Below are positions 18,277 to 42,093 of a stretch of DNA of 64,000 nt, one piece after another. The stretch's first letter is position 1. Each line of letters starts with the position of its first letter. The position numbers were made by a program, and so were the translations under genes. Under the pieces are notes generated by a model that made no database searches, had not been told where the DNA came from, and was given only the letters and a program-made list of their open reading frames with translations. Location: the IMG/VR virus record IMGVR_UViG_3300042549_005931, positions 186,001 to 250,000 of that record; one strand, written 5' to 3'.

Positions 18277-18340
18277 CAAAATATTTTAGATTTTTTTTAC
18301 ATATATTTTTTTATTTAAAAAACTTCTTTTATATTTGTCA

Positions 18341-18477
18341 TAAGATAATGGTTTTCACCATTCAACGGATGTCGACAATCCAGAGTGGAACCTGAAAACA
18401 TAACCCTCTGCCGAGCGCTCATAAAACTGAAGAAGCAGTCAAGAATGGAACGAAACGGGTATTCCATCATTATCTTA
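18341..18477 (+). ncRNA. unidentified structured RNA
   Basis: 12-bp closing stem TAAGATAATGGT/ATCATTATCTTA, internal stems, TATATTTG promoter just upstream. Confidence 0.55.
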
Positions 18478-18480
18478 CAG

Positions 18481-18554
18481 GCTCCCTTAGCTCAGTTGGC
18501 CGGAGCGCCTCACTTGTAATGAGGATGTCGGCGGTTCGAATCCGTCAGGGAGCT
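18481..18554 (+). tRNA. tRNA-Thr(TGT)
   Basis: cloverleaf, loop CTTGTAA. Confidence 0.95.
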
Positions 18555-18560
18555 CAACAA

Positions 18561-18701
18561 GGTTCTATAGTTGTTTAGGTCGCCCCTTAAACAATGAGTG
18601 GGTTAATGATGGTTTAGTATTACTACCCGATATTCTAGATGAAGCGTGGTAAGTGATTAAACAAGTAATTAACGAGATGGGTTCGATTCCCATTAGAGCC
18701 T
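18561..18701 (+). ncRNA. tRNA-like RNA (acceptor + T-arm, expanded interior)
   Basis: GGTTCTA/TAGAGCC acceptor, ATGGG-TTCGATT-CCCAT T-arm, no canonical anticodon arm. Confidence 0.6.
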
Positions 18702-18750
18702 CAAAACATAGGATTAATTACCCTATGTATGGATGGTTCGAAACATCCGA

Positions 18751-18824
18751 TTGATTATGGTGTAATGGTGCACGGAGACCGTAATTGGAGCTCAGGATTA
18801 AGGTTCAAGTCCTTTTTAATCAGC
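18751..18824 (+). pseudogene. degenerate tRNA
   Basis: TTGATTA/TAATCAG acceptor, TGGTGTAATGG D-arm, GGTTCAAGTCC T-arm, broken anticodon arm. Confidence 0.5.
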
Positions 18825-18829
18825 AACAA

Positions 18830-19215
18830 GTGACGACTGTGGTGTAACCCCACGGTATATGAAATCCAAAATGGTCCTGTTGAAGCCGGAATAGTCATAC
18901 AGGTCAGGAGAGAGTTAGTATAAGTTGGGAGTAATTAACCAATTGACGAAAACTAATCACCAAGAAATTGGTCATGATGTCCAACGGGGATAATAAACTT
19001 GTTAATTTGTTAATTTAAGTTCTGGTGGGTTTTATTAAATAATTTTGTTTCATTTTAAACAATTTTAGTTATAAGGAAGTTGAAGAATTGTAACCACCAA
19101 CATAGAAATTAGATTAACAAAGTTTAATTACGGGAGGTGTCTCGTATAACTAATACAATCCCCTAATAGGGACTGATGTAAGATTAAGATTCTTACGACA
19201 CCGAACGTGATTGGA
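18830..19215 (+). ncRNA. unidentified ~390-nt structured RNA
   Basis: nested long-range stems, no ORF. Confidence 0.45.
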
Positions 19216-19224
19216 TTATTAACC

Positions 19225-19299
19225 GCCCCTATCGACAAGCGGTTAAGTCACGTCCCTTTCACGGATGAGTCACGGGTTCGATTCCCGTTGGGGGTACCA
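19225..19299 (+). tRNA. tRNA-Glu(TTC)
   Basis: cloverleaf, loop CTTTCAC, CCA encoded. Confidence 0.95.
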
Positions 19300-19310
19300 A
19301 AAGTTTTATT

Positions 19311-19559
19311 ATGTTAGAACAAATATTGGAGTACTTTGGGGAAGAAGAATTTCTTAAAGCGGACGGATTCGATGAAGCCGTTATTGGTGTTGAAGAAAGT
19401 TCGATGAGACTAATCTATTCAGTTACCAAATGTCTTGAGATATTGGTTACCAATGAAGAGATGTCATTAGAAGAAGCTATTGAGTATTTTGACTTTAATG
19501 TTAGAAGTGCTTATGTAGGTGATAAAACACCCATTTGGTGTGAGGATGGTTTTATGTAA
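19311..19559 (+). CDS. hypothetical phage protein
   Basis: ADGFDEAVIG...EAIEYFDFNV...AYVG motif typical of large phages. Confidence 0.7.
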   Translation: MLEQILEYFGEEEFLKADGFDEAVIGVEESSMRLIYSVTKCLEILVTNEEMSLEEAIEYFDFNVRSAYVGDKTPIWCEDGFM

Positions 19560-19560
19560 T

Positions 19561-19749
19561 ATGAAAAAAATAATATATCTACTAATTGTAATTTTTACAT
19601 TATCCGGTTGTTTTACTTATGTAAGAGAAACTGGTAGATTTTACCCACGTAATAGAAATTTACAACCAAACCATAGAATGGGTATTAACGGTTACCATTT
19701 AAGAAATCAATATTATTTTAGACATATTCAACCATTAAAAAAAAGATAA
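19561..19749 (+). CDS. small lipoprotein
   Basis: MKKIIYLLIVIFTLSGC lipobox from ATG 19561. Confidence 0.6.
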   Translation: MKKIIYLLIVIFTLSGCFTYVRETGRFYPRNRNLQPNHRMGINGYHLRNQYYFRHIQPLKKR

Positions 19750-19791
19750 AGGATTGATTTTCAACATTTTTATATTTATAATAAAAAAGAT

Positions 19792-20139
19792 ATGTTAGAC
19801 TTAAAAGAACTTTTAATTATGCTAGGATTGGCGGTTGGTGGACCATCACACAGTCAAGATATGACTTTTTATCGACAAAAATTATCTAATGAAATGGTTT
19901 TAGAACAAAAACTAAAAGAAGAAATTAAAGCCTTAGAATATAGAAAACTTTGGGACGATGTAAATCAAAAAGAAAATGCAGATTTTGCAGTTAGGTGGTT
20001 TAAAGATAAAAAATCGGAAGATAAATTAGGTAGTTCAAAAAAAGATTTAAATAACACAAGAAAAAAAATAAAAGTATTAAAAAATATCCTTGAAAAAGAT
20101 TCATTAGATAAGGTAGTACCTCAAACTCAGGTACTTTAA
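19792..20139 (+). CDS. hypothetical coiled-coil protein
   Basis: ORF preceded by TATTTATA. Confidence 0.6.
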   Translation: MLDLKELLIMLGLAVGGPSHSQDMTFYRQKLSNEMVLEQKLKEEIKALEYRKLWDDVNQKENADFAVRWFKDKKSEDKLGSSKKDLNNTRKKIKVLKNILEKDSLDKVVPQTQVL

Positions 20140-20178
20140 TTTATTTTCGGATATTTATATATTATAAAAACAAAAATT

Positions 20179-20601
20179 ATGAAAAAATTATTATTTATTT
20201 TCGCGTTAGTTCTTGGTTGTACTTTTAGTTCAACTGCTCAAGAATTGTTTGGTTCCGCAACTAACAAAGGTATGGACGGATACTTAACTGGTGGTTACAT
20301 CAAAAAAGGATGGGGTGCCTATGTTGGTTTTAGATATGATGCTGACCCTATGGTTAGTACTAAAACAGGTAGCTTTGATAAAACTATGAAATTTGGTGTT
20401 ATTCGTATGTTTGCGAGTGAGAAAATTATGATGGGTGTGGGAATCCAACCTGTCGATAATGTTAACAAACCAAATGTTTTTATTGGTTACGCACCATTAA
20501 AATCGGAAGGATTGAAGATATGGGTTATTGGTAATTTAGTAGGTTCTAATTTTACACCAGGTCTTGGTTTAACTTATAAATTATCACAAATTAATTTTTA
20601 A
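20179..20601 (+). CDS. small outer-membrane beta-barrel-like protein
   Basis: signal peptide, Gly/aromatic beta strands, terminal Phe. Confidence 0.55.
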   Translation: MKKLLFIFALVLGCTFSSTAQELFGSATNKGMDGYLTGGYIKKGWGAYVGFRYDADPMVSTKTGSFDKTMKFGVIRMFASEKIMMGVGIQPVDNVNKPNVFIGYAPLKSEGLKIWVIGNLVGSNFTPGLGLTYKLSQINF

Positions 20602-20627
20602 AAATTTACTATTAAATAAAACTTTTG

Positions 20628-20635
20628 TATATTTG
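20628..20635 (+). promoter_or_regulatory. Bacteroidota-type -7 promoter element for leader 2
   Basis: TATATTTG 18 nt before leader ATG. Confidence 0.6.
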
Positions 20636-20653
20636 TATATACTTATTAGAAAA

Positions 20654-20758
20654 ATGAAGAATTTATTAACAACAATATCGCTTAGTTTGAACCCGTCATA
20701 TAATGATAATGGGAGAGGCGTGCAGACGTTAATAAGTTCGGACCAAATATTAGGATAG
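20654..20758 (+). CDS. attenuator leader peptide 2 (MKNLLTTISLSLNPSYNDNGRGVQTLISSDQILG)
   Basis: 34-codon ORF; codons match tRNA array 2; ends GGA TAG TAA like leader 1. Confidence 0.8.
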   Translation: MKNLLTTISLSLNPSYNDNGRGVQTLISSDQILG

Positions 20759-20781
20759 TAAATAAAAAAACTAAAATAAAG

Positions 20782-20822
20782 AAACCCGAACGACTTAAAA
20801 AATTGTTCGGGTTTTTTGTTTT
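20782..20822 (+). terminator. attenuator terminator before tRNA array 2
   Basis: AAACCCGAACGA/TTGTTCGGGTTT + T tract; 5' arm complementary to GTTCGG at 20736-20741. Confidence 0.85.
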
Positions 20823-20902
20823 AATGAAACTTTTACATATATTTGTAAAACAGTTCATCACATAGGTGGTGAAAAATGTTCTTTGACATTGTGAGAAAAA
20901 AT

Positions 20903-20987
20903 GCTCGGGTGGTGTAATGGTAGCCACGAAGGACTTAAAATCCTTTGGACAGAAATGTCCGTGCCGGTTCGAGTCCGGCCCCGAGTA
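20903..20987 (+). tRNA. tRNA-Leu(TAA)
   Basis: type II cloverleaf, loop CTTAAAA. Confidence 0.95.
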
Positions 20988-20989
20988 CA

Positions 20990-21099
20990 AATGTAATGAC
21001 TTAGAAATAAGTGACGGAACAGACGCTATGTATGAAATGGAAACTTTCGAAACTCGTATAAAAGAGTGAATTAGACACAAACCGTACAGACATTACATT
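20990..21099 (+). ncRNA. unidentified structured RNA between tRNAs
   Basis: AATGTAATG/CATTACATT closing stem, ACTTA-GAAA-TAAGT hairpin, ACGG/CCGT. Confidence 0.5.
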
Positions 21100-21104
21100 A
21101 AATT

Positions 21105-21178
21105 GGTTCCGTAGCTCAGCTGGATAGAGCAACTCTCTTCTAAAGAGTAGGTCTTTGGTTCGAATCCAAACGGAATCA
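21105..21178 (+). tRNA. tRNA-Arg(TCT)
   Basis: cloverleaf, loop CTTCTAA. Confidence 0.95.
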
Positions 21179-21183
21179 CATAT

Positions 21184-21258
21184 AGAGTAATGGGCTAATT
21201 GGTAAGCCGCTACATTTGGGTTGTAGACATCATGGGGGTTCGAGTCCCTCTTATTCTA
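21184..21258 (+). tRNA. tRNA-Pro(TGG)
   Basis: cloverleaf, loop TTTGGGT. Confidence 0.88.
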
Positions 21259-21266
21259 CATTAAAT

Positions 21267-21351
21267 GGTTTCGTTGCCGTAGTGGCCGAACGGTCCAGAC
21301 TGTTAATCTGGTGAGTAACATCCATCGTAGGTTCGAATCCTACCGAGACCG
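21267..21351 (+). tRNA. tRNA-Asn(GTT) with long variable arm
   Basis: loop CTGTTAA, G73, ~15-nt variable region. Confidence 0.85.
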
Positions 21352-21403
21352 CTTGACTTTTTCGAATATTTTATGTATTTATTGTTAACTAAAAAAATTA
21401 ATA

Positions 21404-21943
21404 ATGGGTAAGTACTTCGAAAAAATTATAGATTTAAGAAATCAAGGAAAAACATATAAGGAAATATGTGTTGAATTAAACTGTGCAATGTCAACAGTGT
21501 CATATCACTGTAAGTTAAATAAATTGGGTGGCCACACTGATAGACTGACAGATGAAGATAAGGTAGAACTTCAAAAATTATACAATGAAGTTGGCAGTTT
21601 AAAAAAAGTGGCTAAATTAAAAGGTTATGCATTTCAAACTGTTCAAAAATATGTAACAATAAAAAATAGAACAAAAAAAGTTTCAAAATCCGAAGCGGTA
21701 ATAGAATGGAGAAAAAGAACTAAGATAAAATTAGTTGAATATAAAGGTGGTAAATGTCAAATTTGTGATTACAATAAATCATTCAATGCATTACATTTCC
21801 ATCATATTAACCCAAATGAAAAAGATTTTTCAATATCAGGTAAATCATTATCATTTGACAAATTAAAAACTGAGGTTGATAAATGTATTTTAGTATGTTC
21901 AAATTGTCATTCTGAAATACATGAAGGTTTAATAACATTATAA
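21404..21943 (+). CDS. HTH + HNH homing-endonuclease-like protein
   Basis: CQIC...FHHINP...C.LVCSNCHSEIH; N-terminal HTH motifs. Confidence 0.85.
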   Translation: MGKYFEKIIDLRNQGKTYKEICVELNCAMSTVSYHCKLNKLGGHTDRLTDEDKVELQKLYNEVGSLKKVAKLKGYAFQTVQKYVTIKNRTKKVSKSEAVIEWRKRTKIKLVEYKGGKCQICDYNKSFNALHFHHINPNEKDFSISGKSLSFDKLKTEVDKCILVCSNCHSEIHEGLITL

Positions 21944-21944
21944 C

Positions 21945-22020
21945 ACCCTTATGGACAAACGGCAAAGTCACTGGTTTTAGGCACCAGGTTTTATAGGTTC
22001 GAATCCTATTAGGGGTACCA
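21945..22020 (+). tRNA. tRNA-Leu(TAG) with short variable loop
   Basis: loop TTTAGGC, 5-nt variable loop, CCA encoded. Confidence 0.85.
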
Positions 22021-22037
22021 ACTAAATTTTTAATATT

Positions 22038-22157
22038 ATGGCAGTTACATCAAAAAGAGTTGCAAAGAAAGCTAGTAAAGCTTTAAGTAGTAAAAAAACG
22101 AGTAAAACAACTAAGACTCTTGCAGGTAGTGCATTGAGACAAAGAAGAAAAAAATAG
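22038..22157 (+). CDS. small basic protein (MAVTSKRVAKKASKALSSKKTSKTTKTLAGSALRQRRKK)
   Basis: 39-aa ORF between tRNAs; not in ORF track. Confidence 0.7.
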   Translation: MAVTSKRVAKKASKALSSKKTSKTTKTLAGSALRQRRKK

Positions 22158-22162
22158 TAATT

Positions 22163-22245
22163 GGGAGTGTTGAGCAACGGTTGCTTAGCAGACTGTAAAT
22201 CTGTGGTCTACGACATTGGCGGTTCGAATCCGTCCACTCCCACCA
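22163..22245 (+). tRNA. tRNA-Tyr(GTA)
   Basis: type II, loop CTGTAAA, CCA encoded. Confidence 0.92.
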
Positions 22246-22258
22246 AAACAAAAAAACT

Positions 22259-22819
22259 ATGGAATTCATTTACAGAAGAGAAAACGTATTATCAAAAGAA
22301 CAATGTGATGAGATAATACAAAAGTTTGAAGAGTCTGATTTTAAATTGGCAGGTATTACCGCATCAGGTGTTAACGAATCTATTAAAAAATCTACAGACC
22401 TTACATTTCATCATAATACTTTAGATGATGAAAAAATTAATAATCTTTGGGGTGATACTGTTCGTAAAATTGTTCGTGATTTAAATTATCACATGAACAA
22501 ATACAAGGAGGAAAATGAATACTTGAAATTTTTTAAAATAGAGATGGATTCATTCAACATTCAAAAGTACGAACCAAATGGTGGATTTTATACTTGGCAT
22601 TGTGAAACCATTCATTGTTTAGATAGAGTTACCGCTTGGATGATATATCTTAATGATGTTGATGATGGTGGTACTGAGTTTATGAAACAAAAACACACGG
22701 AGAAAGCTGAAGCGGGTAAGTTAATTATATGGCCAGCAGATTGGACACATGCACATCGAGGTCAGGTTAGCACTACCAAAACAAAATATATTTTAACAGG
22801 TTGGTTTAGTCAAAAGTAA
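22259..22819 (+). CDS. 2OG-Fe(II) oxygenase (prolyl-hydroxylase-like)
   Basis: WHCE, YLNDVDDGGTEF, THAHRG, KYILTGW. Confidence 0.85.
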   Translation: MEFIYRRENVLSKEQCDEIIQKFEESDFKLAGITASGVNESIKKSTDLTFHHNTLDDEKINNLWGDTVRKIVRDLNYHMNKYKEENEYLKFFKIEMDSFNIQKYEPNGGFYTWHCETIHCLDRVTAWMIYLNDVDDGGTEFMKQKHTEKAEAGKLIIWPADWTHAHRGQVSTTKTKYILTGWFSQK

Positions 22820-22820
22820 T

Positions 22821-23387
22821 ATGGAATTCATTTATAGAAAAGAAAATGCATTATCATTAGATTTATGTAATGATATAATTACTAAATTTAATGAATCTAA
22901 TTTACCTGAACCGGGTGTAGTAGGAAAAGGTGTAGTTGAAGAAATAAAAAAATCGATAGATTTATCTTTCCATGCCGATTCATTAAACACTAAAGAATTA
23001 CAAGATATATGGGGTCCACCATTGGGTGAAAGTATTCCAATTATTAATTCATGTGTTCAAGAATATTGTGATAAATTTGAATATTTGAAAATGATGAGTT
23101 CATTTAAAATGGAAGCTTTTAATATTCAAAAGTATGAACCGGGTGGTGGATTTTATACTTGGCATTGTGAAGCTACTTTAAAAATAAGACGTGTTGTTGT
23201 TTGGATGGTTTATTTAAACGATGTTGACGATGGAGGAACCGAATTTATACATCAAAACCATATCGAAAAAGCGGAAGCTGGTAAATTATTGTTGTGGCCG
23301 GTTGATTGGACACATGCACATAGAGGACAAATTAGTTATACCAAAACAAAATATATTTTAACAGGTTGGTATTCTATACCCCAATAA
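22821..23387 (+). CDS. 2OG-Fe(II) oxygenase, tandem paralog
   Basis: same motifs, high identity to previous gene. Confidence 0.85.
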   Translation: MEFIYRKENALSLDLCNDIITKFNESNLPEPGVVGKGVVEEIKKSIDLSFHADSLNTKELQDIWGPPLGESIPIINSCVQEYCDKFEYLKMMSSFKMEAFNIQKYEPGGGFYTWHCEATLKIRRVVVWMVYLNDVDDGGTEFIHQNHIEKAEAGKLLLWPVDWTHAHRGQISYTKTKYILTGWYSIPQ

Positions 23388-23434
23388 TCGTTGAAATATA
23401 CGATAACAGATTTTATCGTTAGATTAAACGATAT

Positions 23435-23508
23435 GGACTTATAGCTCAGATGGTTAGAGCAGGTCGCTCATAACGACAAGGTCACAGGTTCGAGCCCTGT
23501 TTGGTCCA
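23435..23508 (+). tRNA. tRNA-Ile2(CAT, lysidine type; reads ATA)
   Basis: loop CTCATAA; GGACTTATAGCTCAG body resembles Ile2 rather than Met. Confidence 0.75.
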
Positions 23509-23588
23509 CAAAAAGTGTCTTGGTATGCTCTGACGAAAGTCAACGACAAGGTCTCGGTAGGCAGAACGCGTCTGATTCTACCCAAAAC

Positions 23589-23662
23589 AGAAGATTAGCT
23601 CAGTTGGTTAGAGCATTTGGTTTACATCCAAAGGGTCATAGGTTCGAATCCTATATCTTCTA
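23589..23662 (+). tRNA. tRNA-Val(TAC)
   Basis: cloverleaf, loop TTTACAT. Confidence 0.92.
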
Positions 23663-23729
23663 CAGAAAACTGAGATAGGATATTATTGATATGGATACAA
23701 TTCCTGATAATATTGCTACTCAGTTGATT

Positions 23730-23805
23730 GCGAAAGTAGCTCAGTTGGTAGAGCATTACCTTGCCAAGGTAAGGGTCGCGAGTTCGAATCTCGTTTTTCG
23801 CTCCA
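23730..23805 (+). tRNA. tRNA-Gly(GCC)
   Basis: cloverleaf, loop TTGCCAA, CCA encoded. Confidence 0.95.
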
Positions 23806-23919
23806 TAAGGAGCTCCCGCTTTAAGGTGAAGGACACGCGGGCGAATAACTTTCAGGGTAAGTTGTAAAAGAACTCGAAACCTTAAGTCTAGTGTGGGAGA
23901 GACTCCTACCCACACACAA

Positions 23920-23991
23920 GCGAATATAGCACAGCGGTTAGTGCTCTGGTCTTCCAAACCGGAAACGACAGTTCGAATCTGTCTATTCGCT
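23920..23991 (+). tRNA. tRNA-Gly(TCC)
   Basis: cloverleaf, loop CTTCCAA. Confidence 0.93.
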
Positions 23992-24000
23992 CTATTAATC

Positions 24001-24073
24001 GGGATTGAGGTCAAACGGTTAAGATGTCGCCCTGTCACGGCGCACGGAGCGGGTTCAACTCCCGTCAGTCCCG
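24001..24073 (+). tRNA. tRNA-Asp(GTC)
   Basis: cloverleaf, loop CTGTCAC. Confidence 0.9.
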
Positions 24074-24076
24074 CAT

Positions 24077-24147
24077 TCCTCTATGGTGTAACGGTAACAC
24101 AACTGTTTTTGGTGCAGTTATTCATGGTTCGAATCCATGTAGGGGGT
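24077..24147 (+). tRNA. tRNA-Gln(TTG)
   Basis: cloverleaf, loop TTTTGGT. Confidence 0.92.
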
Positions 24148-24150
24148 CAA

Positions 24151-24347
24151 TGAGTAAGAGATACTCAGCAGTCTTTAATCCAAGACTCATTTAAAAATGG
24201 ATAGGATAATAGACTGGACATCCTTAAACGCCAGTCTCTTGGGAATAAAGCTGGAAAATCGTCCTTGCTCCCAGTAACGATTGACTTTTTAATGAGGGAT
24301 GCCTCGCAGGTTTTTCAAACAGCTAAATAACCGAAATAACTACTCAC
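24151..24347 (+). ncRNA. unidentified ~200-nt structured RNA
   Basis: TGAGTA/TACTCA ends, GACTGG/CCAGTC hairpin, potential pseudoknot AATCGT/ACGATT. Confidence 0.55.
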
Positions 24348-24372
24348 ATATAATCTCAATGTGGGGAAACAA

Positions 24373-24454
24373 GGAGAGGTGGACAATGGTCGTTGAGCGG
24401 TCTTGAAAACCGTCGGGTGTAAAAGCTTTGCAGGTTCGAATCCTGTCCTCTCCG
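24373..24454 (+). tRNA. tRNA-Ser(TGA)
   Basis: type II, loop CTTGAAA. Confidence 0.9.
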
Positions 24455-24511
24455 CACCCTACAATCCCATGTCGGCTCGAGTGGGTGAGAGTATAGGTAT
24501 CGGGCCCTTAT

Positions 24512-24600
24512 AGAGGGTTGGGTGAGTGGCTTAAACCAGCAGTTTGCTAAACTGCGGATGGGGTTAAACCTGTCCACCGGTTCGAATCCGGTATCCTCTA
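24512..24600 (+). tRNA. tRNA-Ser(GCT)
   Basis: type II, loop TTGCTAA. Confidence 0.93.
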
Positions 24601-24614
24601 CACTATTTATATGA

Positions 24615-26835: not shown

Positions 26836-27603
26836 CGGCGGTCTATAGTCGTTAAATAAACTACGAAAGTAGGATAAAGTGAATCGAAAGTTATAAACGG
26901 TTTGCGGTTTCGGTAACGGAACTCGAGTAGACAAGCAAGACATCATCTGTCCTTAGTTCCGAGGGTAACACTGTAGGAAATGGATAGGTGACTTGGCAAT
27001 CTGAGTTGTCAAGTTGAGGTGGGAACACTAATAAGAGTAACTTGTGGAACTTTACAAGAAATGGGACCTCCAATCTCACTATTGTGTTGTTCAATATCAT
27101 GGGTACCTTAAAATCGAAAGGTATGGTGAAGTACGAGTGGTGTCGTTATCATCCTTAATAAAACCCTACCAAGAGTTTTATTTTGAAGGTGTCCAAAAGT
27201 ATGGAGGTTGGGAGACTTCAGAGAGTAGTTTAGTATTCTGTTGTTCAAAAGATAATGGAGCTGGCAGACGGGCCACTACTTTCAAGATTCGGAAACAAAA
27301 AACCCTTACAATGGTGTAAATCAAAAAAAAGGAAAAGTGCTCGTCAGTCGTTGGAAACAGGTGACTACATAGTCGTGAGATGTTCACGGCCATAGAAGAC
27401 CCCAAGTCCGATATGATTTTTGAGAAAAGTTCTATATAGTGCGGCGGTATTGTATAGAGAAGAGTAACGAGAGAGTATTCAACGACTTAAGGATTGGTTA
27501 ATCTAATTGACCGTCACTGATTGGTACAGTTCAAAAGACTGTGGATAAGAGAAGAATCAATAATGTCTCTAAAGTCAATCACAAAATGGTGTAATCTCAG
27601 CCA
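26836..27603 (+). ncRNA. giant structured ncRNA, GOLLD-like
   Basis: ~770-nt purine-rich non-coding tract with many hairpins, own TAAGTTTG promoter and boxA-like site, near tRNA arrays of a phage. Confidence 0.6.
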
Positions 27604-27736: not shown

Positions 27737-28483
27737 ATGAGAATCGTTTGTATTTCTGACACCCATGACCTTCATCAAAAGATGACACATAAGTTACCGA
27801 AAGGTGATGTGTTAATCCATGCGGGTGATGTTAGTAATATTGGAGAACAACCCGATGTAACACGATTTATTCATTGGTTCATGAATATTGAAGGATATGA
27901 TTCTAAAATATTTATTGCCGGTAATCACGACTTTGCATTTGAGAGAATTAATGAACCACACCATAAAGGTGATTTTGAATGGTTATCTAATTTAATCAAT
28001 GAAGAAAATCTATCTCAATCTAATGTAACATATTTGGAAGATAATTTCATTACCATTGAAAGTCCTGAATTCTCAAGACCAATTAAGATTTATGGTAGTC
28101 CTTGGCAACCTGAATTTTATAATTGGGCATTTAACTTACCACGTGGTGGTGATGATATGTTTGAGAAATGGAATATGATACCCGATGATACAGATGTATT
28201 AATCACACACGGACCGGCAGAGAATGTTAGGGACTTTGTTCCTAATGGTCAAATCGTTGGTTGTGGTATGTTAAGACATCGTATTGAAACAATTAGACCG
28301 GCATTACATGTATGTGGTCACATACATTACGCATACGGTGTGTCTTTAGTTAATAGTATTATGTATGTGAATGCGGCAATATGTGATGAAAGATATTCAC
28401 CATCAAATAAACCTATTGTCATTGACCTAAAAGAAGTTGATGGCGAGATTTTAGCTTACTTAGTAGAAGATGAATCCAATTAG
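27737..28483 (+). CDS. metallophosphoesterase
   Basis: SDTH, HAGD, AGNHD, THGP, GHIH motifs. Confidence 0.9.
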   Translation: MRIVCISDTHDLHQKMTHKLPKGDVLIHAGDVSNIGEQPDVTRFIHWFMNIEGYDSKIFIAGNHDFAFERINEPHHKGDFEWLSNLINEENLSQSNVTYLEDNFITIESPEFSRPIKIYGSPWQPEFYNWAFNLPRGGDDMFEKWNMIPDDTDVLITHGPAENVRDFVPNGQIVGCGMLRHRIETIRPALHVCGHIHYAYGVSLVNSIMYVNAAICDERYSPSNKPIVIDLKEVDGEILAYLVEDESN

Positions 28484-29135
28484 TGTAGTTATCTCAACAA
28501 GAGAAATTGATAATGATTATTTGAAACATGTTAGTAAGGTGTTTTCACATCCTAAAACTGAAATCATTATTTACGAAAACCAAGGTGATTTTTCGTTACC
28601 TGAATTGTATAATAAGGGATTAAAGGATTCAAAAAATGAGGTTGTTGTGTTCATGCACGATGACCTCATCATTGAAACACCTAATTTAACCCCCAAAATC
28701 TTACGACTGTTCAACGATAATCCTGAGTATGGTATAATCGGTGTTGCCGGTACTGATAATCTCCTGAGTGGAATGTGGTGGCAAGATAGAGAATCTATGC
28801 AAGGTCAAGTCGGTCATGAACATGAAGGAAGAAAACATACCAACAAATACTCCGGTACATTTGGTGAAAACTTAAAAGAAGTTGTTGTAATTGATGGTTT
28901 GTTTATGTGTATTCATAAGGAGAGAATTAAACATAACTTCAACGAACAATTTGAAGGATTTCACTTCTACGATTTACCAATCTGTTTGGAGAATTATCTT
29001 GACGGAGTAAAAATTGGTGTAACAACCAAAATTAAATTAACACATAAGTCAATTGGTGTTACAAATAAAAAGTGGGAGAAAAATAAGTTGTTATTTGAAG
29101 CTCTATATGAGAAGAAATTACCAATTAAGATTTAA
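28470..29135 (+). CDS. glycosyltransferase (GT2-like)
   Basis: YNKGL, FMHDD, IDGLF, FHFYD motifs. Confidence 0.75.
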   Translation: MNPISVVISTREIDNDYLKHVSKVFSHPKTEIIIYENQGDFSLPELYNKGLKDSKNEVVVFMHDDLIIETPNLTPKILRLFNDNPEYGIIGVAGTDNLLSGMWWQDRESMQGQVGHEHEGRKHTNKYSGTFGENLKEVVVIDGLFMCIHKERIKHNFNEQFEGFHFYDLPICLENYLDGVKIGVTTKIKLTHKSIGVTNKKWEKNKLLFEALYEKKLPIKI

Positions 29136-29170: not shown

Positions 29171-29422
29171 ATGAAAAAATTAATAGAATTTATTAAAAAC
29201 CTTTTTGTTAAAGTTGATAAGATTGAACAAGAAGTAGAACAAATGGTTGAAAAAAGTAATGCTTCACCTGAAACTAAAGTTAAACTTAAAAAAGAGTTAA
29301 AGAAAATTGATGCGGTTGAAGAACAAGCTAAAGAAGCCGTTATTGACGCTGTCGAGAAAGTTGAAGTGGCAGTTGAGGTTGTAAAGAAAAAGAAACGTTA
29401 TTACAGACCAAAGAAAAAATAA
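29171..29422 (+). CDS. hypothetical protein
   Basis: 83-aa ORF after TATTTATA. Confidence 0.6.
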   Translation: MKKLIEFIKNLFVKVDKIEQEVEQMVEKSNASPETKVKLKKELKKIDAVEEQAKEAVIDAVEKVEVAVEVVKKKKRYYRPKKK

Positions 29423-29468
29423 ATTGGTATAGTAAAATATTTTACATACATTTGTAAAACATTTACAT

Positions 29469-29870
29469 GGGGATGACCGGCATTTGACTGGCGTTTGTAT
29501 TGTAAGTGGGCACGTAGTCAGACTTCATCTATGACTTAAATAAACGGTGGAAACTTTTAGACGGCAACGTTTACAAAAACATGGAAATTGCGGGTATTCT
29601 TGCAACTTCTAACGTAGCAGTAGCCTAAGGCAAACCTACAACGGGTCGACTGACATATAACCTAGGAACAGAAGTCTTCAAAGTGTGATACCACTCAGAG
29701 TGTCAAAGGTCTCGTTCAGAGTGCTACCTTAAGTGAACTCGACACAGTTATTGGTAACGATGTCAAAATAGGAACCAATTATTTGTCTATTGAGAACTAA
29801 TAGAATAAACGTGTAGTCCATTTATTATTCGGCGGACAGGACCAGGGTTCGAATCCCTGCATCTCCACCA
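29469..29870 (+). ncRNA. ssrA: tmRNA
   Basis: GGGGATGA...GAC 5' end, GGTTCGAATCCC...CTCCACCA 3' end, tag ORF GNVYKNMEIAGILATSNVAVA* at 29563-29628. Confidence 0.93.
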
Positions 29871-30093
29871 AAACAAAAACCCATCATTTGATGGGTTTTT
29901 TTATATCTTTATGTTCTCAGGTCCTATAACGACCAAAAGGTCCGAAGACCCTTTTGTCGAGATTTAAGAACACCTCCTTTTCGTTTATAAAAGTTATCGT
30001 CTAACGGCGACCAAACCAATCAGACTCTCTTATAAATATCGCAAAAAAAAGAGTTAGACGATTTATCTAACTCTTTTAATGAAAAAAATTCAA

Positions 30094-32238
30094 TTATCTT
30101 TTTTGCCAAACATAACGAGCACCCTTGTCTGTGGCAGTCACATTAGAAGGGTCATATTCCATTTTATCTAAATACCTATCAAGTTTTTGTTTTTCTGACG
30201 GTTCAAGTGCCGGACCATTATATGCTGTTCTACCAAGTACACCTGTTGCATTAAACAAACCATTCTGAACTAATGAATTATAATATGCGGCATCTGTCAT
30301 ACCTTCAGATGCCGATGCTCCCGACGCTGATGTATTTGCACTTGGTATTTTAGGAAGGTCAACCGATTTCATTTGAATTGGAGTTCTTAAGTATTTAACA
30401 TCAGCACCACCCTCAGTTGAAGTTGCTGTTTGTGCAACACTACCTTGTTTACAATCTGCCATTACTTTATCATATATAGCTTTAGTAATACCATTTTTTA
30501 CATCATGTCCCTTTTCAATTAATTTATTACGAGTATTAGGTCCAAATTTACCATCAGATGAAAGGCCTAAACATGCTTGAATCTGTGCGATTTTTTGGTC
30601 TTTACATCCGTATGTTAATGGAGTAGTTTCAATATTTACATTCGAACAATCATAATATGTTCTACGAGTGGTACTTCCACCACCTCCTGAGTTTCCGTCT
30701 CCACCACCTGGTTTTCTGTCTTTGTCCCATACAATTTTTAAATCACTTTCTTCACTTTGTTCACCAATAATGTTTACTTTTCTTGGTGATTGTTGTTGGT
30801 TAGGGTTGGTTTGTGTGGGTGTTACTGGTACAACTTTACCACTTTCAATTTGGTCAAGTAATGCAATTAATTTTTCCTTTAATCTTACCGAACCTGGTTG
30901 AGATGTATATATCATCTTTAATGTTGTACGTAAACTTGTATTTAAAAAATGTCCAGATTTTTCATAATAATGTAAAAAATCTTGAACTTTAGGACTAGTT
31001 GAATACTTAACTAATAAATTATATGCCTTTTGTAAATCACTTTGACTTACCGGAAAATCTAAAAAGTCAATCATATAATTAACATCCCTATCAACCTCAA
31101 CGTCAGATTGCTCCATTAAGTATCTTTCATTCAATACTCTTTTCACGATTTGACTCAGACTTTCATTTACTTGAGTTTTACCCATGTTTTCGTTTGTTTG
31201 AGCTTTACCAGCGGTACATGTCCATGTACCCATATCTTTATTTTGAAGATTCATTATTCTACCATTAGGATAAAATCGTAATCCACTTGGATACTTTTCA
31301 GAAGCTGGTGTAGTTACACCAACTTGTCCCGATTTTGTTGTTGAAAGTTGTGCTTGTTTATTTTTAAGCATTGATGTTAAACAAGGACCCCAATTTGTTG
31401 GGGAAGTGTCTTCTATTGGGTTTCCATTTTCATCAACAAGTACTACCGCAGTATCGTCAGTTGATTGATAGAAATAATAAAGTGCCGCTGCCCCTAATCC
31501 CACAGCTGTAAGTGTTGATAACATCTTATTATTTACAACTACTTTTTTAACTCTACCAGGGAATTTCATTAACCCTTCTTTAGTAGTTTTAAAAATACCT
31601 TTTACTGTTTTAATTACCACATTATTACCAAGACCCTTGGCAATATTTGCTCCAGTACCTGTTGTTACTTTTGCATCTTTAGCAAGTAGTTTTTGGACTT
31701 GATTAATACTAATCTTATCCATACCCGAAATTGTTTTCTGAGCGTTAGCCCATTTTGACTGCATTTTACTTGCATTTTGAAATTCCTTGGTTGCCAATGA
31801 TATATCTTTACTTGTGGCATTAGCATCTTTTGATACTTTATTAATGTTACTTTTAGCGGCCTTAACATCAGCGGAGGCTAAACCTTTAGTATTTGCTGCT
31901 GTTTCAGCTATCTGTCTTTCTATACCTTCTTGTACACTGTCCACCAATTTTTGTGCTTCGTTTTTATTAACTTTAACCAAATCATCAAACGACATTTTAT
32001 GTTTTACTCTACACGCTTCTTGTGTTAATTCCTTAAGTGATTGTGCATATTCAGGAGTTTTACGGAATGAAGCTGCGGTAAATTTCTTACCACTTTTAAC
32101 AACGTCATTTAATGCTTTATTTATTGCAGCTTCGGCTGCTGCACCAATTGTACTCTTAAAATTTTTACCAAATATTGAACTTATAAATTTTTGGAGAGCT
32201 CCTTCATTTAATAGTACTGATGTTTTATTGTTTTCCAT
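30094..32238 (-). CDS. large protein with TM segment and peptidoglycan-binding-like motif
   Basis: IQACLGLSSDGKFGPNT PG-binding motif; central TM. Confidence 0.6.
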   Translation of the reverse strand: MENNKTSVLLNEGALQKFISSIFGKNFKSTIGAAAEAAINKALNDVVKSGKKFTAASFRKTPEYAQSLKELTQEACRVKHKMSFDDLVKVNKNEAQKLVDSVQEGIERQIAETAANTKGLASADVKAAKSNINKVSKDANATSKDISLATKEFQNASKMQSKWANAQKTISGMDKISINQVQKLLAKDAKVTTGTGANIAKGLGNNVVIKTVKGIFKTTKEGLMKFPGRVKKVVVNNKMLSTLTAVGLGAAALYYFYQSTDDTAVVLVDENGNPIEDTSPTNWGPCLTSMLKNKQAQLSTTKSGQVGVTTPASEKYPSGLRFYPNGRIMNLQNKDMGTWTCTAGKAQTNENMGKTQVNESLSQIVKRVLNERYLMEQSDVEVDRDVNYMIDFLDFPVSQSDLQKAYNLLVKYSTSPKVQDFLHYYEKSGHFLNTSLRTTLKMIYTSQPGSVRLKEKLIALLDQIESGKVVPVTPTQTNPNQQQSPRKVNIIGEQSEESDLKIVWDKDRKPGGGDGNSGGGGSTTRRTYYDCSNVNIETTPLTYGCKDQKIAQIQACLGLSSDGKFGPNTRNKLIEKGHDVKNGITKAIYDKVMADCKQGSVAQTATSTEGGADVKYLRTPIQMKSVDLPKIPSANTSASGASASEGMTDAAYYNSLVQNGLFNATGVLGRTAYNGPALEPSEKQKLDRYLDKMEYDPSNVTATDKGARYVWQKR

Positions 32239-36807: not shown

Positions 36808-39162
36808 TTAGTTTTCTCTACGTTCATCTCTATTATAATGTTCAAAACGATTGTGTTCGGTTGGTGTTGCCAACAATATACCAAAATTCATTTTACCTTT
36901 AACGGTGTCTTGATACATTTGAGACATCCATGTTTGTTCATATGGATGTTGCCATTTGGTATCTAAAAACATTTTCTTATTACCTTCTCTTGAAACCACT
37001 TGTGGCCAATTACAATAGTAAATTTCACCGGTTGCGTATGGTAATTGTCTATGTGACTTTATATTTTTAAATTTCTGAAATGGGGCCAAGTTAACATCAT
37101 CAGAATTTTTTATTGGTACTTCAGGGAATAATTCCGCTCTTACGTGTGCCGGAACATTATGCCAAGCCCATTGTTTTGTATTATCACCAAAAAACTCACT
37201 AAAATTCCATTTAAGAAAATCAAAGTTTTCCATCCATATAATATTCATCATGATATTATAGAAGTCATTTATTTTTCTTCTAAATCCATTTCTACAAAAC
37301 TCATCTTTACCCAAGTAAAAAAACATATCATCCTCAAAAAAGAAATGATAATCAAATTCATTTTCTTCAGCATGTTCAGCAATAAATTGTCTACCACCAC
37401 ATATACCTAAATTATCTTTTTTAATCTCAACAAATCCATATTTCTCACATAATTCTTTATACTTTTCATCAGTTGATTTATCGATTGAATTATTTAATAG
37501 GAATTTTTTTGGTTGGGTTAAAAAGTTATTATCATATATTTCAAATGAAGTGCATAATTTTTCAAATTGACTTGGAGAGTTATAAGTTAATACATATAAA
37601 GCTACATTATTCATGTTATGTTCATTAATTTTTACGTTACCACCTGATTCAACCTTAGGTGTTAAGTTATCGGTTTTTAAATTTTCAAAAAACAAACCCA
37701 ATAATCCATTATGTTCTATTTCAAAATATTGGAAATATTCCGGGTACTTGTATAGTAAAATAGTAAATAAACTTTCTTCAGTACCCATATATCCCATACC
37801 CAATGTTGTGGACATCAAATTATAATACAACTCATTAACCTTTGGTATTAAATGTTTTGGACCACCAAATATGCCGCCTCTTGCAACTTTATCTACCTCA
37901 CCGCCAGCATATTCACACATTGGAGAATATTCAAATCCATGTATTTCAACTTTACCATCATAAGGGAAAGATACAAAACTAAATTTGGAAAAATACTTGT
38001 CAATTTTTTTAATAACGTTATCATGTGAAAAATAACCTTCATGCACGGTATTGGTTAATGCACCATCAATCCAAACTAAATGTGATGAATTAAATGGGTC
38101 CATAATCATCGCATCATTTAATAAAAACATTTTTGACATAACAATTGGATTGTACATATCTAACTTTGCTTGAGTGCTTTCAACTAACCAACCAACTTGA
38201 TTATACCAATCTGGATTTGTTCTAATCTTTTGTATTTTATCATACAATTCCCCGTTATTCTTAAACCAATCTAATTCTTTAACAATAATTAAAGTGTTAT
38301 GTTCTGACCTACGTTCCTTAACAAAATCTTTATATTTTTCTTCGATGAAAATAATCATATTATCTTCAACTAACATAAGTTTCTTTAGATGGTTAAGATA
38401 GTGGTCGAATTTTCTACTCCAACCTTCAGTAAGTTCTTCTCTTTTAATATCCCATATTCCCGTCACAATTGTAGTACCGCCATAGTTAATCTCTTTTTTC
38501 GGTTCTTTCTGTGGATTTAAATTTTCAACAACACCATTCTTTTTGTATACACCTAATTGTTCACATACTTCGATAACAGTATACTCGACACCTCTTTCTT
38601 TAAATGTATCCTCAATTGCAGCTCTAACACCAGGTAAATCAAATCGTTGATAATCATGAAAACAAATATAACCTCCGTCACTAACTCTATCAAAAATTTT
38701 ATTTAAACTATCATAAATCGAATCGTAAAAGTCACCATCTAAAAATGCAAATGATATTTTTTCTGGTAATTTATCTTCAGGAACATCTTTAAACCAATCC
38801 TTATGAATAATTGGTGTTGGTATGTTATTTTGTTCAAAATTTGAGATTAGAATTTCTTCAGTACTTTTTAATGTTCCCGCTTTCCATCCAGTGTTTTCTT
38901 CCCATTTTGATAACGGAGGTAAACCCTCAAAAGAATCATAAACATATAATTTTTTTTCTGATTCCATCTCAATTAATGTCTTCATCAAATACTTTGATGA
39001 TTCCCCAACATAGCAACCAAATTCTGTAACGTCACCCTCTATGTTCTCTTCAATTGATTTAATCAAAAAACTAACTAAATTTTTTATTTGGTCATCGTTT
39101 ATTATTGATGAGTCAATTTTTTTATTTTCAAATTTTAAAATATTATCTTTTTTACTAATCAT
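36808..39162 (-). CDS. TylF/MycF methyltransferase fused to HtrL-like and GT-A glycosyltransferase domains
   Basis: EFGCYVG, DSFEGLP, LDGDFYDS; WIDG, GTEES; FFEDD. Confidence 0.75.
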   Translation of the reverse strand: MISKKDNILKFENKKIDSSIINDDQIKNLVSFLIKSIEENIEGDVTEFGCYVGESSKYLMKTLIEMESEKKLYVYDSFEGLPPLSKWEENTGWKAGTLKSTEEILISNFEQNNIPTPIIHKDWFKDVPEDKLPEKISFAFLDGDFYDSIYDSLNKIFDRVSDGGYICFHDYQRFDLPGVRAAIEDTFKERGVEYTVIEVCEQLGVYKKNGVVENLNPQKEPKKEINYGGTTIVTGIWDIKREELTEGWSRKFDHYLNHLKKLMLVEDNMIIFIEEKYKDFVKERRSEHNTLIIVKELDWFKNNGELYDKIQKIRTNPDWYNQVGWLVESTQAKLDMYNPIVMSKMFLLNDAMIMDPFNSSHLVWIDGALTNTVHEGYFSHDNVIKKIDKYFSKFSFVSFPYDGKVEIHGFEYSPMCEYAGGEVDKVARGGIFGGPKHLIPKVNELYYNLMSTTLGMGYMGTEESLFTILLYKYPEYFQYFEIEHNGLLGLFFENLKTDNLTPKVESGGNVKINEHNMNNVALYVLTYNSPSQFEKLCTSFEIYDNNFLTQPKKFLLNNSIDKSTDEKYKELCEKYGFVEIKKDNLGICGGRQFIAEHAEENEFDYHFFFEDDMFFYLGKDEFCRNGFRRKINDFYNIMMNIIWMENFDFLKWNFSEFFGDNTKQWAWHNVPAHVRAELFPEVPIKNSDDVNLAPFQKFKNIKSHRQLPYATGEIYYCNWPQVVSREGNKKMFLDTKWQHPYEQTWMSQMYQDTVKGKMNFGILLATPTEHNRFEHYNRDERREN

Positions 39163-39911
39163 ATCTCATTTTTTAATAATTCTAAATCATACGGAACATT
39201 TGTCCCATTAATTTTTTGAAATGTCACTTCTTTATTATCACTTTTGTATTCTTCCATAAATTTTAAATTTTCTTCAAGAAGATGTGACATTGTCCATCCT
39301 AATTTATGACAAAACCATCTACTCACATTCGCATTTAATGGTTCTCTATCCATTATTATTAGTCTATCATATTGTCTTGAAATAAAATACATTAAATGTT
39401 CAAAACCTTCTGGATTTGGTATTGAATAGAGATAATCAAAAAATTCAACACTGTGTAATTTCATATCTTCAAAAATATTATTTTTGTTTGTATTGGCAAA
39501 GAATATATCGGTAGACATATTAATTCTTTTGTACCATATATTACCAGCATATGCACAATTTTGATTTTCAATATTCTTTAATATTTGAATTAATTTTTTT
39601 TCGTCCAATAACCAACTATCGATGGATAGTTTTACCCATAAATTTACCCCGTTTGATTTTAGAAAATCATATCCACCTAATGTTAACTCACAATCTGCAT
39701 CCGCATAATCACATCCACTTGGGTGTCTATCATTACCTCTACCCCCATTAGGTTTATATTGACATCTAAAATCACATTCAAAATTTTCATCCGAACCATT
39801 ATAACATAATGCAACATGTGGTTTTATTATTTCATATGAATCTAATATTTTTTTTAGTTCAGGCCAATACTCCTCTCTATTATAACAAGTAATTATAAAA
39901 TTAACATTCAT
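39159..39911 (-). CDS. putative glycosyltransferase
   Basis: NFIITCYNR N-terminus; within glycan cluster. Confidence 0.5.
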   Translation of the reverse strand: MNVNFIITCYNREEYWPELKKILDSYEIIKPHVALCYNGSDENFECDFRCQYKPNGGRGNDRHPSGCDYADADCELTLGGYDFLKSNGVNLWVKLSIDSWLLDEKKLIQILKNIENQNCAYAGNIWYKRINMSTDIFFANTNKNNIFEDMKLHSVEFFDYLYSIPNPEGFEHLMYFISRQYDRLIIMDREPLNANVSRWFCHKLGWTMSHLLEENLKFMEEYKSDNKEVTFQKINGTNVPYDLELLKNEI

Positions 39912-39914
39912 ACT

Positions 39915-41432
39915 CTACAAAGGATTATTTTTAATATATTCTTCTCCATTTATTTCCGGTGTGGATTTACTTCCTCCCTGATATCTTCTTGATGCGTCGG
40001 TATGACCAACATATGGACCCTCACCTAAATTACCATATAAAAAAGTACCCCAATCATCTTTGATGTCATCCCACTTATTTTCCGATATAATTTTTCTATA
40101 TGTCGGTATCATTGTCTCCTCAACATTATGTTGACCTTGATGTATTTTACCTACACCACCATTATCGATATATAATTCAAACCACTCTTTCATTTTAGAT
40201 AATCGAAACATTGCCGGATTGTTAGACCATCTACAAACCGTAATTAAATCAACCTCACTAACTCTATTTTCTAAATCAAAAGGTGTTACGTTATTATCAA
40301 TATCTGTGGCAATATCAAACCCTCGCATGACATTATCATCTTTAGAAAACCAAACCGCATTTATAAAGTTGTGGTTATTAAACGCATCAATTAAAGATAA
40401 AAAATCAATGTTGTCCTTTTTAAGGAAAACCCAATCATGCTCTAAAAATATAAAATATGGTGTACGTATTTTTTTCACCATACTATCTAAACTATTAATT
40501 AATCCACCAAATCCGGTTGAAAGTGTTATATTAAATTCACTAATATAATCTCTGAAATATGCATTTAATCTAACCTGTTCAAGTCTAACATCAAACCCAC
40601 TCGTCTCATCATAATGGATTAAAATTTTACATTTTTTTAATTCATTAGGTAAACTATGGAATAAATATTTTAAGTAAAACATATAATTTTCAACAAAGTG
40701 ACCTGTAATAACAATTGTAACTTCTTTTTCTATTTTATTTTCCATAAAGTTTTCTTTGTAATTATCAAATAAAAATCTATGATAATTTCCTTGAATCCAT
40801 GTACTATAATCAACGGGACCTCTTGGTTGAAGAGTTGAAACAAATCCACTTGCATGGTTAATTAGTAATGGTAAAGTTGTTAATGTTTTAAATCCGTAAT
40901 TATTTAACAGGGGAAGATAATCGTCTATTGCAATGTAATCTCTTTTGTAATTGGAATTATCCAATAAAAATTGATAAGCTCTTTTCTTAATCAAATATGC
41001 CCACGCTCCCGTACTTTTATCAACCACACCTAAATTTTCGGTAATTGGTACTATAAATGATTTAGGATTACACCCAAATAAAAGTACATCCCATTCTACA
41101 TTTTCTAAATCACTTTTAACCTTTTCTATAGAGTCTTTAAAAAATGTTTTTTCTGTTTTTATTGGGAGATAACATTCATCTTCAATATTAATATCATCCT
41201 CAACAACAAATATAATTTCTAAATCTTCATCTAATGATTGTTTGAATATACCTAAATGACTTTTGGTGCAAGAAAATTGTATCATTTCATCAGTCAATGC
41301 ATCAAATCTTTCTAACCCCTCTATTTGATATTTTAAAATTAAATTTTCTATGTGTTCTTTTCTGTCAACAGATGACGATAGATTAATATAAAATCCCTTA
41401 TCGGCAAAAGTATTACCTAATATACTAAACAT
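39915..41432 (-). CDS. GT25-like + GT-A fusion glycosyltransferase
   Basis: YINL...DRK, C..SH, VEDD, GAWAY; second domain FLEHDW. Confidence 0.7.
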   Translation of the reverse strand: MFSILGNTFADKGFYINLSSSVDRKEHIENLILKYQIEGLERFDALTDEMIQFSCTKSHLGIFKQSLDEDLEIIFVVEDDINIEDECYLPIKTEKTFFKDSIEKVKSDLENVEWDVLLFGCNPKSFIVPITENLGVVDKSTGAWAYLIKKRAYQFLLDNSNYKRDYIAIDDYLPLLNNYGFKTLTTLPLLINHASGFVSTLQPRGPVDYSTWIQGNYHRFLFDNYKENFMENKIEKEVTIVITGHFVENYMFYLKYLFHSLPNELKKCKILIHYDETSGFDVRLEQVRLNAYFRDYISEFNITLSTGFGGLINSLDSMVKKIRTPYFIFLEHDWVFLKKDNIDFLSLIDAFNNHNFINAVWFSKDDNVMRGFDIATDIDNNVTPFDLENRVSEVDLITVCRWSNNPAMFRLSKMKEWFELYIDNGGVGKIHQGQHNVEETMIPTYRKIISENKWDDIKDDWGTFLYGNLGEGPYVGHTDASRRYQGGSKSTPEINGEEYIKNNPL

Positions 41433-42093
41433 ACTTTAATAGTTCTTTTTTAATTATTAATTTATTTCCCTCCTCATATTGAACTTCGGCAATGTCGTCA
41501 ATTAAAACTACCTCATCCATATTGTTAATCCGTTCAATTAAATCAGAAAACCCTCTAACTTTATCATTGTTTATATGTAGATTTATATCCTCAAATAAAA
41601 TTAAATCAGGGATAATGTTGTTATCAAAAGCCTGTAGAATAATTTCACTATCCATTCCCTCACAATCAATTTTTAAAAAATTAATTTTATCAATTTCATA
41701 TTTTTCAATGAGGTCTTTAAATGTTATTTTAGTTACAGGTATTTTATCGGTATATTCACTTTCTTCTCTAAAAAAAGAACATAACCCTCTTGAATCATCA
41801 TTTTTTGGTGTTATTAAAAAATCCTCACCTTTTTCAATGTGTATCGCCGAATTTTCGTACTTAAAATTGTTATTCGGGTAATGTTGTTGATAATTACTCA
41901 CGAGCAAATCAAATCTCTCTTTAACAGGTTCAACAAATAAACTTGACCAATTTATGTTTAATAAATTAGATAGGAAAACCTCATCTACAAAGATACCATC
42001 ATTTGCACCTATTGAAACGAATGTGAAATTTTCGTTATCACTAATGTTACTTAATATTTTTTTTAATTTTATCATATTAATATCTATCTTCAA
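41425..42093 (-). CDS. FkbM family methyltransferase
   Basis: IGANDG, VEP, KIDCEGMD. Confidence 0.85.
   Translation of the reverse strand: MKIDINMIKLKKILSNISDNENFTFVSIGANDGIFVDEVFLSNLLNINWSSLFVEPVKERFDLLVSNYQQHYPNNNFKYENSAIHIEKGEDFLITPKNDDSRGLCSFFREESEYTDKIPVTKITFKDLIEKYEIDKINFLKIDCEGMDSEIILQAFDNNIIPDLILFEDINLHINNDKVRGFSDLIERINNMDEVVLIDDIAEVQYEEGNKLIIKKELLKYV

Follow-up and report, generated by a model that had tools for sequence, protein, structure and literature searches.

A conserved small non-coding RNA gene of giant phages carries a Shine-Dalgarno-like run complementary to the 16S rRNA 3′ tail of Bacteroidota

Organisation of the locus

The analysed window is a stretch of 64,000 nucleotides (positions 186,001 to 250,000) of the 269-kb IMG/VR phage contig IMGVR_UViG_3300042549_005931, with a GC content of 32.5%. 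ARAGORN identified 23 genes in it, comprising 22 tRNAs and a tmRNA at 29469-29870 (+), the latter also being recovered by Rfam with 87.4 bits. The tRNA genes form a dense array at 17557-24601 (+) of about 22-25 genes covering most amino acids, of which three, at 17557, 24001 and 21268, were found by Rfam but missed by ARAGORN. A full-length GOLLD RNA (RF02032, 280 bits) is located at 27221-27603 (+), about 1.9 kb upstream of the tmRNA. The tmRNA has an unusually long predicted tag (GNVYKNMEIAGILATSNVAVA) and a host-type TAnnTTTG box upstream, and distant relatives also encode SmpB (PF01668, 168 bits) next to it (window 29469-29870 (+); L010:6749-7186 (-), L010 being one of the distant related loci), while this window has no smpB at that position. 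Elsewhere in the window a ClpB/ClpC-type double AAA+ ATPase (AAA_2, 234 bits; ClpB_D2-small) is encoded at 3474-5495 (+), and a ClpC gene is also annotated near smpB in a published bS21-phage scaffold. A cluster of sugar-modifying genes (a TylF-type methyltransferase fused to HtrL_YibB, Glyco_transf_25, GlcNAc transferase and Glyco_tranf_2_5), together with an IMPDH/GMP-reductase-like gene and a metallophosphoesterase, occupies 36808-44084 (-), 44196-45269 (+) and 27737-29135 (+).

The element studied here lies in the 224-nt gap between the tmRNA and the stop codon of a structural gene, a 714-aa ORF on the minus strand (30094-32238). The original prediction was that this gap holds a small RNA locus in which a 13-nt copy of the Bacteroidota 16S 3′ end on the plus strand corresponds, on the minus strand, to an extended Shine-Dalgarno (SD) sequence with no ATG after it. 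This observation was confirmed. The 13-mer GAACACCTCCTTT is found at 29968-29980 on the plus strand and is the only copy in the window even when one mismatch is allowed (expected 0.06), although the 9-mer AAAGGAGGT taken alone is not improbable in a sequence of this size (expected 0.41), and it is the conservation across relatives that makes it significant. Read along the minus strand, the terminator of the 714-aa gene (30078-30045) is followed by the promoter-like box GATATTTATA (30040-30031, with TATTTATA at 30038-30031), a hairpin (30025-29999), the junction GAUAA (29998-29994), the SD-like stretch ACGAAAAGGAGGUGUUC (with AAAGGAGGTGTTC at 29980-29968), an AUCUC segment (29963-29959), a UUCG-capped hairpin (29959-29930) and a strong bidirectional intrinsic terminator (29900-29875), which was detected on both strands by a terminator scan and is shared in this window with the convergent tmRNA. 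The minus strand folds to -70 kcal/mol (z = -7.3), compared with -51.6 kcal/mol for the plus strand.

The element matches no Rfam 15 family: a scan of the window at gathering thresholds returned only GOLLD, tmRNA and tRNAs, and a permissive scan of 29400-30200 gave only sub-threshold, terminator-driven matches. Nor does it qualify as the ribosome-binding site of an mRNA, as no ATG, GTG or TTG is present at usable spacing downstream of the SD-like run and no ORF keeps its frame in relatives. A blastn search of the locus against 50,697 GenBank phages found no match.

A conserved and structured RNA family

A search for related loci with the 714-aa protein alone, and then with a 25-sequence alignment, returned only the window's own contig plus one other, and relatives were instead reached through homologues of the protein and the contigs encoding them, and through DNA patterns. 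In relatives whose 714-aa protein is only 57-58% identical, the roughly 165-nt element is about 98-100% conserved, and conservation begins exactly at GATATTTAT. In two of these close relatives, L002 and L006, a 183-186-aa ORF (L002:5417-5968 and L006:5390-5950) sits between the terminator of the element and the tmRNA, so that the terminator belongs to the element; this ORF, which is absent from the window and from the close relative L008, contains CxxC motifs and looked like a homing endonuclease by eye, but it has no Pfam support and may be a mobile gene. In more distant clades (37-44% protein identity) two other genes and a phage smpB intervene, yet the element is still present, convergent with smpB and the tmRNA. 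A convergent tmRNA lies 90 nt to 2.6 kb downstream of the element in most loci with enough flank. Relatives differ by 1-nt indels inside the hairpin, and the frames after the SD-like run differ between clades, indicating that there is no conserved peptide.

An exact-pattern scan of IMG/VR found 66 contigs, and a second, independent pattern that leaves the SD-like region unspecified found 85 contigs with 68 distinct sequences. A covariance model built from 48 sequences recovered all of these plus divergent members, giving full-length matches of 51-117 bits in 70 loci, with 104.9 bits for the contig of this window, where the match corresponds to a core of about 105 nt (29926-30031); whole metagenome and virome collections were not searched with it. 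Of 96 extra loci fetched with a tmRNA anchor, only 6 held clear family members and about 6 more held a divergent form, so that many tmRNA-bearing phages may lack the RNA, or the fetched flanks may simply not reach it. The divergent form (L125:311-411, L176, L090:5246-5346, L102, L114:204-303 and L127) scores about 27 bits and keeps GAUAA, GAAAGGAGG(G), AUCU and a terminator hairpin, but its 5′ hairpin is unrelated. Among 185,579 species genomes, the only hit was a 7.4-kb contig (NZ_JBJTND010000053.1) binned into a Flavobacterium MAG, which carries the same phage-type tmRNA and is therefore a phage fragment, probably binned with its host, and gives a weak hint about the host.

In the model-based alignment of 70 sequences, 93.6% of cells are paired and 15 of 30 pairs show compensatory changes, none of 500 column shuffles reaches the observed values, and sliding the partner columns by 1-3 positions drops pairing to 43-54%. 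Hairpin 1 (29999-30025) is a 10-bp stem with one bulge and the loop sequence GGUUUGGUCGCC, and nine of its 10 pairs show compensatory changes across 67 distinct sequences. In the GAUAA junction on its 3′ side, ATAA is invariant and the G nearly invariant in two alignments of the family, and the junction is also kept in the divergent group. Hairpin 2 (29930-29959) carries a UUCG loop here and CUAAAG-type loops in other clades and is followed by a U-rich tail; compensatory and G-U changes occur in 4 of its pairs, with 97% of cells paired. It may itself terminate transcription in clades lacking a further terminator, as in L010-L012, three distant loci in which the convergent smpB gene begins right after it. 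Single-sequence folds of diverse members further predict a closing helix between AACGA (29981-29985) and UCGUU (29932-29928), which would form a three-way junction around the SD-like hairpin and hairpin 2, but the support from the alignment is only partial (84% paired, with some misaligned rows). An outer stem in which AGAACAU (29911-29917) pairs with GUGUUCU (29973-29967) is part of the minimum-free-energy fold of the window and is kept in the close relatives L002, L006 and L008, but is absent in distant clades. A helix between the 5′ end and the segment after GAUAA looked plausible in single folds but is not claimed, since cognate pairs were not more stable than non-cognate ones (Mann-Whitney p = 0.12).

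The minus strand is fixed as the RNA strand by the G-U pairs, which make up 313 of 2002 paired cells (15.6%) and would be A-C mismatches on the other strand, as well as by the orientation of the promoter-like box. Within this box, ATATTTAT is invariant in 51 aligned family members, while the sequence upstream of it is not conserved. In the window, 17 of 28 copies of this motif lie 4-23 nt upstream of a same-strand ORF start (e.g., 17255(-), 19772(+), 29149(+), 34707(-), 58498(-) and 62117(-)), suggesting a phage promoter class that gives leaderless or very short-leader mRNAs. This assignment is inferred from a motif without transcript data, and the transcription start is accordingly inferred a few nucleotides downstream, at about 30029-30024. 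With an intergenic position, a promoter-like box shared with phage ORFs, a terminator or U-rich hairpin and covarying secondary structure, the element has the features of an independently transcribed small RNA gene.

The Shine-Dalgarno-like run and its phage context

The SD-like run AAAGGAGGUGUUC (29968-29980, minus strand), with its invariant stretch ACGAAAAGGAGGU, is the most conserved single-stranded feature of the RNA. Conservation of the 13-mer in related phages had been named in advance as one of the points on which the original prediction could fail; the full 13-nt match turned out to hold only in part of the family, whereas a core of 9-10 nt, (G)AAAGGAGGU, is conserved across it. With the pattern that did not specify the run, 66 of 68 distinct members keep GGAGG and the exceptions read GGGAGG or GGGGG, while several clades have GGAGG followed by one extra base and then UGUUCC, which still complements the 16S tail. 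The run is also kept in the divergent group described above. No family member with a run matched to the alternative, Chryseobacterium-type anti-SD (UCUCA) was found, as a search of metagenomes with AAATGAGAT in place of AAAGGAGGT gave 3 hits, all of which are unrelated chance matches, and there is thus no covariation with host 16S.

The last 11 nt of the F. johnsoniae 16S rRNA are ACCUCCUUUCU (PMC7797042). In the 13-mer these are preceded by GAAC, as in Bacteroidota 16S rRNA. Predicted duplex energies between family members and the tail average -14.4 kcal/mol (-12.9 to -17.1) for the literature-confirmed 11-nt tail and -18.3 kcal/mol (-13.4 to -22.6) for a 15-nt tail, compared with -8.4 kcal/mol for shuffled RNAs and the 15-nt tail. 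With 9-13 consecutive pairs and energies of about -13 kcal/mol or lower, the run reaches the level of the extended SD of rpsU, the bS21 gene, reported to be the only gene with an extended SD in Flavobacteriales (9-13 bp, -14 to -21 kcal/mol; PMC9976891), although it does not lie upstream of a bS21 coding sequence. Part of the run, GAGGU (29976-29972), can form a weak 5-bp helix with the invariant AUCUC (29959-29963), as predicted by RNAalifold and by single-sequence folds, and opening the site costs about 4 kcal/mol. Both strands of this helix are invariant, so covariation gives no evidence either way.

In the window, 73 of 74 long ORFs have no SD, as expected for a Bacteroidota host; the hosts were not identified directly. 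A search with E. coli bS21 as query found nothing in the window or in all the loci then collected, and tblastn of the same protein against GenBank phages gave no Bacteroidota-type query either. The contig sequence beyond the left edge of the window (L202), however, revealed a TerL gene, a T4-type portal gene (Portal_T4), a 62-aa bS21 gene on the opposite strand (L202:18619-18807 (-); PF01165, 45.2 bits against a cut-off of 27) and a prohead protease gene (Peptidase_S77). This bS21 gene lies about 7 kb left of window position 1 and about 37 kb from the element, has no SD, has a TATATTTG box about 20 nt upstream, and is carried by 38 related loci. The arrangement, together with the contig size, GC content and number of tRNAs, agrees with that of the freshwater Bacteroidetes bS21 jumbo phages of Chen et al. 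2022 (bS21 on the reverse strand within the TerL-portal-prohead protease-MCP block, a genome of about 300 kb, 31-34% GC and many tRNAs; PMC9723584), one of whose scaffolds also carries smpB 16 genes away from bS21; their contigs were not matched to IMG/VR identifiers. All 8 element-bearing contigs whose structural block was fetched encode bS21. None of 24 distinct phage bS21 upstream regions contains an SD, and a TAnnTTTG-type host promoter is found there instead.

Possible function and comparison with known systems

Published work has shown that Bacteroidia ribosomes hide the anti-SD in a pocket formed by bS21, bS18 and bS6 (PMC7797042), and that in Flavobacteriales ribosomes lacking bS21 translate rpsU preferentially, closing an autoregulatory loop (PMC9976891). 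In F. johnsoniae a long SD-anti-SD helix and bS21 are mutually exclusive, the 13-bp helix sterically excluding bS21 (PMC13000457; PMC13000453). The best available reading, to which a probability of only about 0.45 is assigned, is that the phage RNA is a trans-acting mimic of the rpsU initiation region. In this view, a stand-alone RNA of about 105 nt, or about 160 nt if transcription runs to the strong terminator, would use its extended SD look-alike, (G)AAA(A)GGAGGU(G/A)UU(C), to pair during infection with the 16S tail whenever the latter is free of its pocket, and the complex could not go on to translation because the RNA has no start codon and carries a stable hairpin just downstream. Subunits lacking bS21 would thereby be titrated away from host rpsU mRNA, which the RNA would outcompete, blocking host bS21 resynthesis and breaking bS21 autoregulation, and host bS21 may also be kept or pushed off the platform, which would favour phage mRNAs and the phage's own SD-less bS21. 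The latter is SD-independent and would be unaffected. The analysis itself establishes the gene, its structure, its strand, its conservation and its co-occurrence with phage bS21, whereas transcription, 30S binding and the consequences of binding, for which no expression or binding data were obtained, are inferences. The interpretation offered by the original prediction, a 30S-binding or decoy RNA that modulates initiation, is thus partly supported: its anatomy of promoter, extended SD without ORF, UUCG hairpin and terminator on the minus strand is entirely right, and the proposed function is plausible.

Other observations weigh against a simple decoy. The 3′ half of the SD-like run is predicted to be mostly paired with AUCUC (unpaired probability about 0.12), so that the conserved purines could be structural, part of a three-way junction, rather than a pairing seed. 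Hairpin 1, its invariant loop and the GAUAA junction are just as conserved and are not explained by the decoy model, which is the main reason for caution, and co-occurrence with bS21 and tmRNA may simply reflect shared ancestry within one phage lineage. An ordinary regulatory small RNA, whose purine-rich region would pair with C/U-rich, ACCUCCUUU-type sites in host or phage mRNAs as Bacteroides small RNAs do with their targets, would suit the stand-alone anatomy and the largely unpaired AAAG part of the motif (0.82). It is nevertheless considered unlikely, because the window contains no second site complementary to the seed, which is the perfect complement of the 16S 3′ tail, the most abundant complementary sequence in any cell, and because extended SD-like sequences are otherwise purged from Flavobacteriales transcriptomes (PMC9976891); a seed that stays invariant across phages with presumably different hosts also fits a universal target such as rRNA better than a particular mRNA. 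Somewhat less likely still is a protein-binding or otherwise structural RNA, for example a sponge or scaffold for a phage or host RNA-binding protein or a partner of the tmRNA/SmpB system, in which the three-way junction and the hairpin-1 loop form the functional surface and GGAGG is one strand of a helix. The invariant hairpin-1 loop, GAUAA and AUCUCG, the predicted GAGGU/AUCUC pairing and the convergent position kept next to the tmRNA, and next to smpB in some clades, despite variable insertions would agree with this. However, the divergent group keeps GAAAGGAGG and AUCU while having replaced hairpin 1 completely, which points to the purine run as the core, variants preserve complementarity to the 16S tail even where a base is inserted (GGAGG-U-UGUUCC), which is not expected if only the internal 5-bp helix mattered, and the tmRNA neighbourhood may be inherited synteny.

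Two further alternatives are very unlikely. The run could be a true ribosome-binding site for a tiny or non-AUG-initiated peptide, since the invariant AUC lies 6-9 nt downstream of GGAGG across clades, a range that would place it near the P site, or a relic of a captured rpsU-type leader that has lost its ORF. However, AUC is not a normal start codon, the downstream frames differ between clades through 1-nt indels and stops in the hairpin loops of some clades, near-100% nucleotide conservation with covarying stems is the signature of an RNA rather than of a peptide or a decaying relic, and the phage's own genes do not use SDs. Alternatively, the plus strand, which carries GAACACCUCCUUU, could yield by read-through from tmRNA or smpB a copy of the 16S tail acting as a decoy for bS21, bS18 and bS6, and in L010-L012 the element does lie directly 3′ of smpB on that strand. 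The G-U pairs, the much weaker plus-strand fold, the terminator separating the element from the tmRNA in the window and the orientation of the invariant promoter box all argue against this.

bS21 is the ribosomal protein most often encoded by phages and is carried by many aquatic phages, and how the phage copy displaces the host copy and how rpsU autoregulation is overcome is an open question raised explicitly in PMC9976891, whose authors suggested that host autoregulation could counter phage bS21 and speculated that such phages encode a factor aiding bS21 exchange. The RNA is a concrete, easily synthesised candidate for this factor. In a bolder and more doubtful version of the model, it would be the first natural trans-acting SD mimic, stripping host bS21 from Bacteroidota 30S subunits or keeping it off them and shutting down its SD-dependent resynthesis, so that ribosomes are refitted with the phage's own bS21. 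Even if the decoy model is wrong, this is a widespread structured RNA family without an Rfam match or a bacterial chromosomal copy, with an invariant motif complementary to the anti-SD, located in the translation-gene neighbourhood (tRNAs, tmRNA, SmpB, GOLLD) of giant freshwater phages. No paper describing a natural RNA that targets the anti-SD in trans was found, and the element is therefore regarded as new in kind, with a function not yet proven.

The closest known counterpart is the translation initiation region of Flavobacteriales rpsU mRNA (PMC7797042, PMC9976891, PMC13000457), which shares 9-13 nt of uninterrupted complementarity to the 16S tail and a predicted pairing energy in the same range, such a sequence being otherwise unique in an SD-free genetic background. 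In the phage element no AUG and no bS21 ORF follow, and the run is embedded in a conserved structured RNA with its own promoter and terminator, encoded by a phage whose own bS21 gene lacks any SD; similarity to the host leader beyond the SD was not compared. The proposed logic, in which a non-coding RNA imitates the natural ligand of a central machine and sequesters it, is that of molecular-mimic or sponge RNAs such as 6S RNA, an open-promoter mimic that traps RNA polymerase, and CsrB/RsmZ, GGA-motif sponges for CsrA. Here, however, the target would be the rRNA anti-SD of a ribosome subpopulation, with a single binding motif rather than many and without sequence or structure similarity. C/U-rich small RNAs of Firmicutes such as RsaE, which imitate the anti-SD and bind the SDs of mRNAs, likewise exploit SD/anti-SD complementarity in trans, but with reversed polarity, since here the small RNA carries the SD and its presumed partner is the ribosome's own rRNA. 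Small stable RNAs of unknown function encoded beside tRNA genes in large phages, such as the T4 species 1/2 RNAs and the GOLLD RNA at its separate locus in this same window, are also phage-encoded, structured and located in the tRNA/tmRNA neighbourhood of a large phage genome, but show no sequence or structural relationship to the element.
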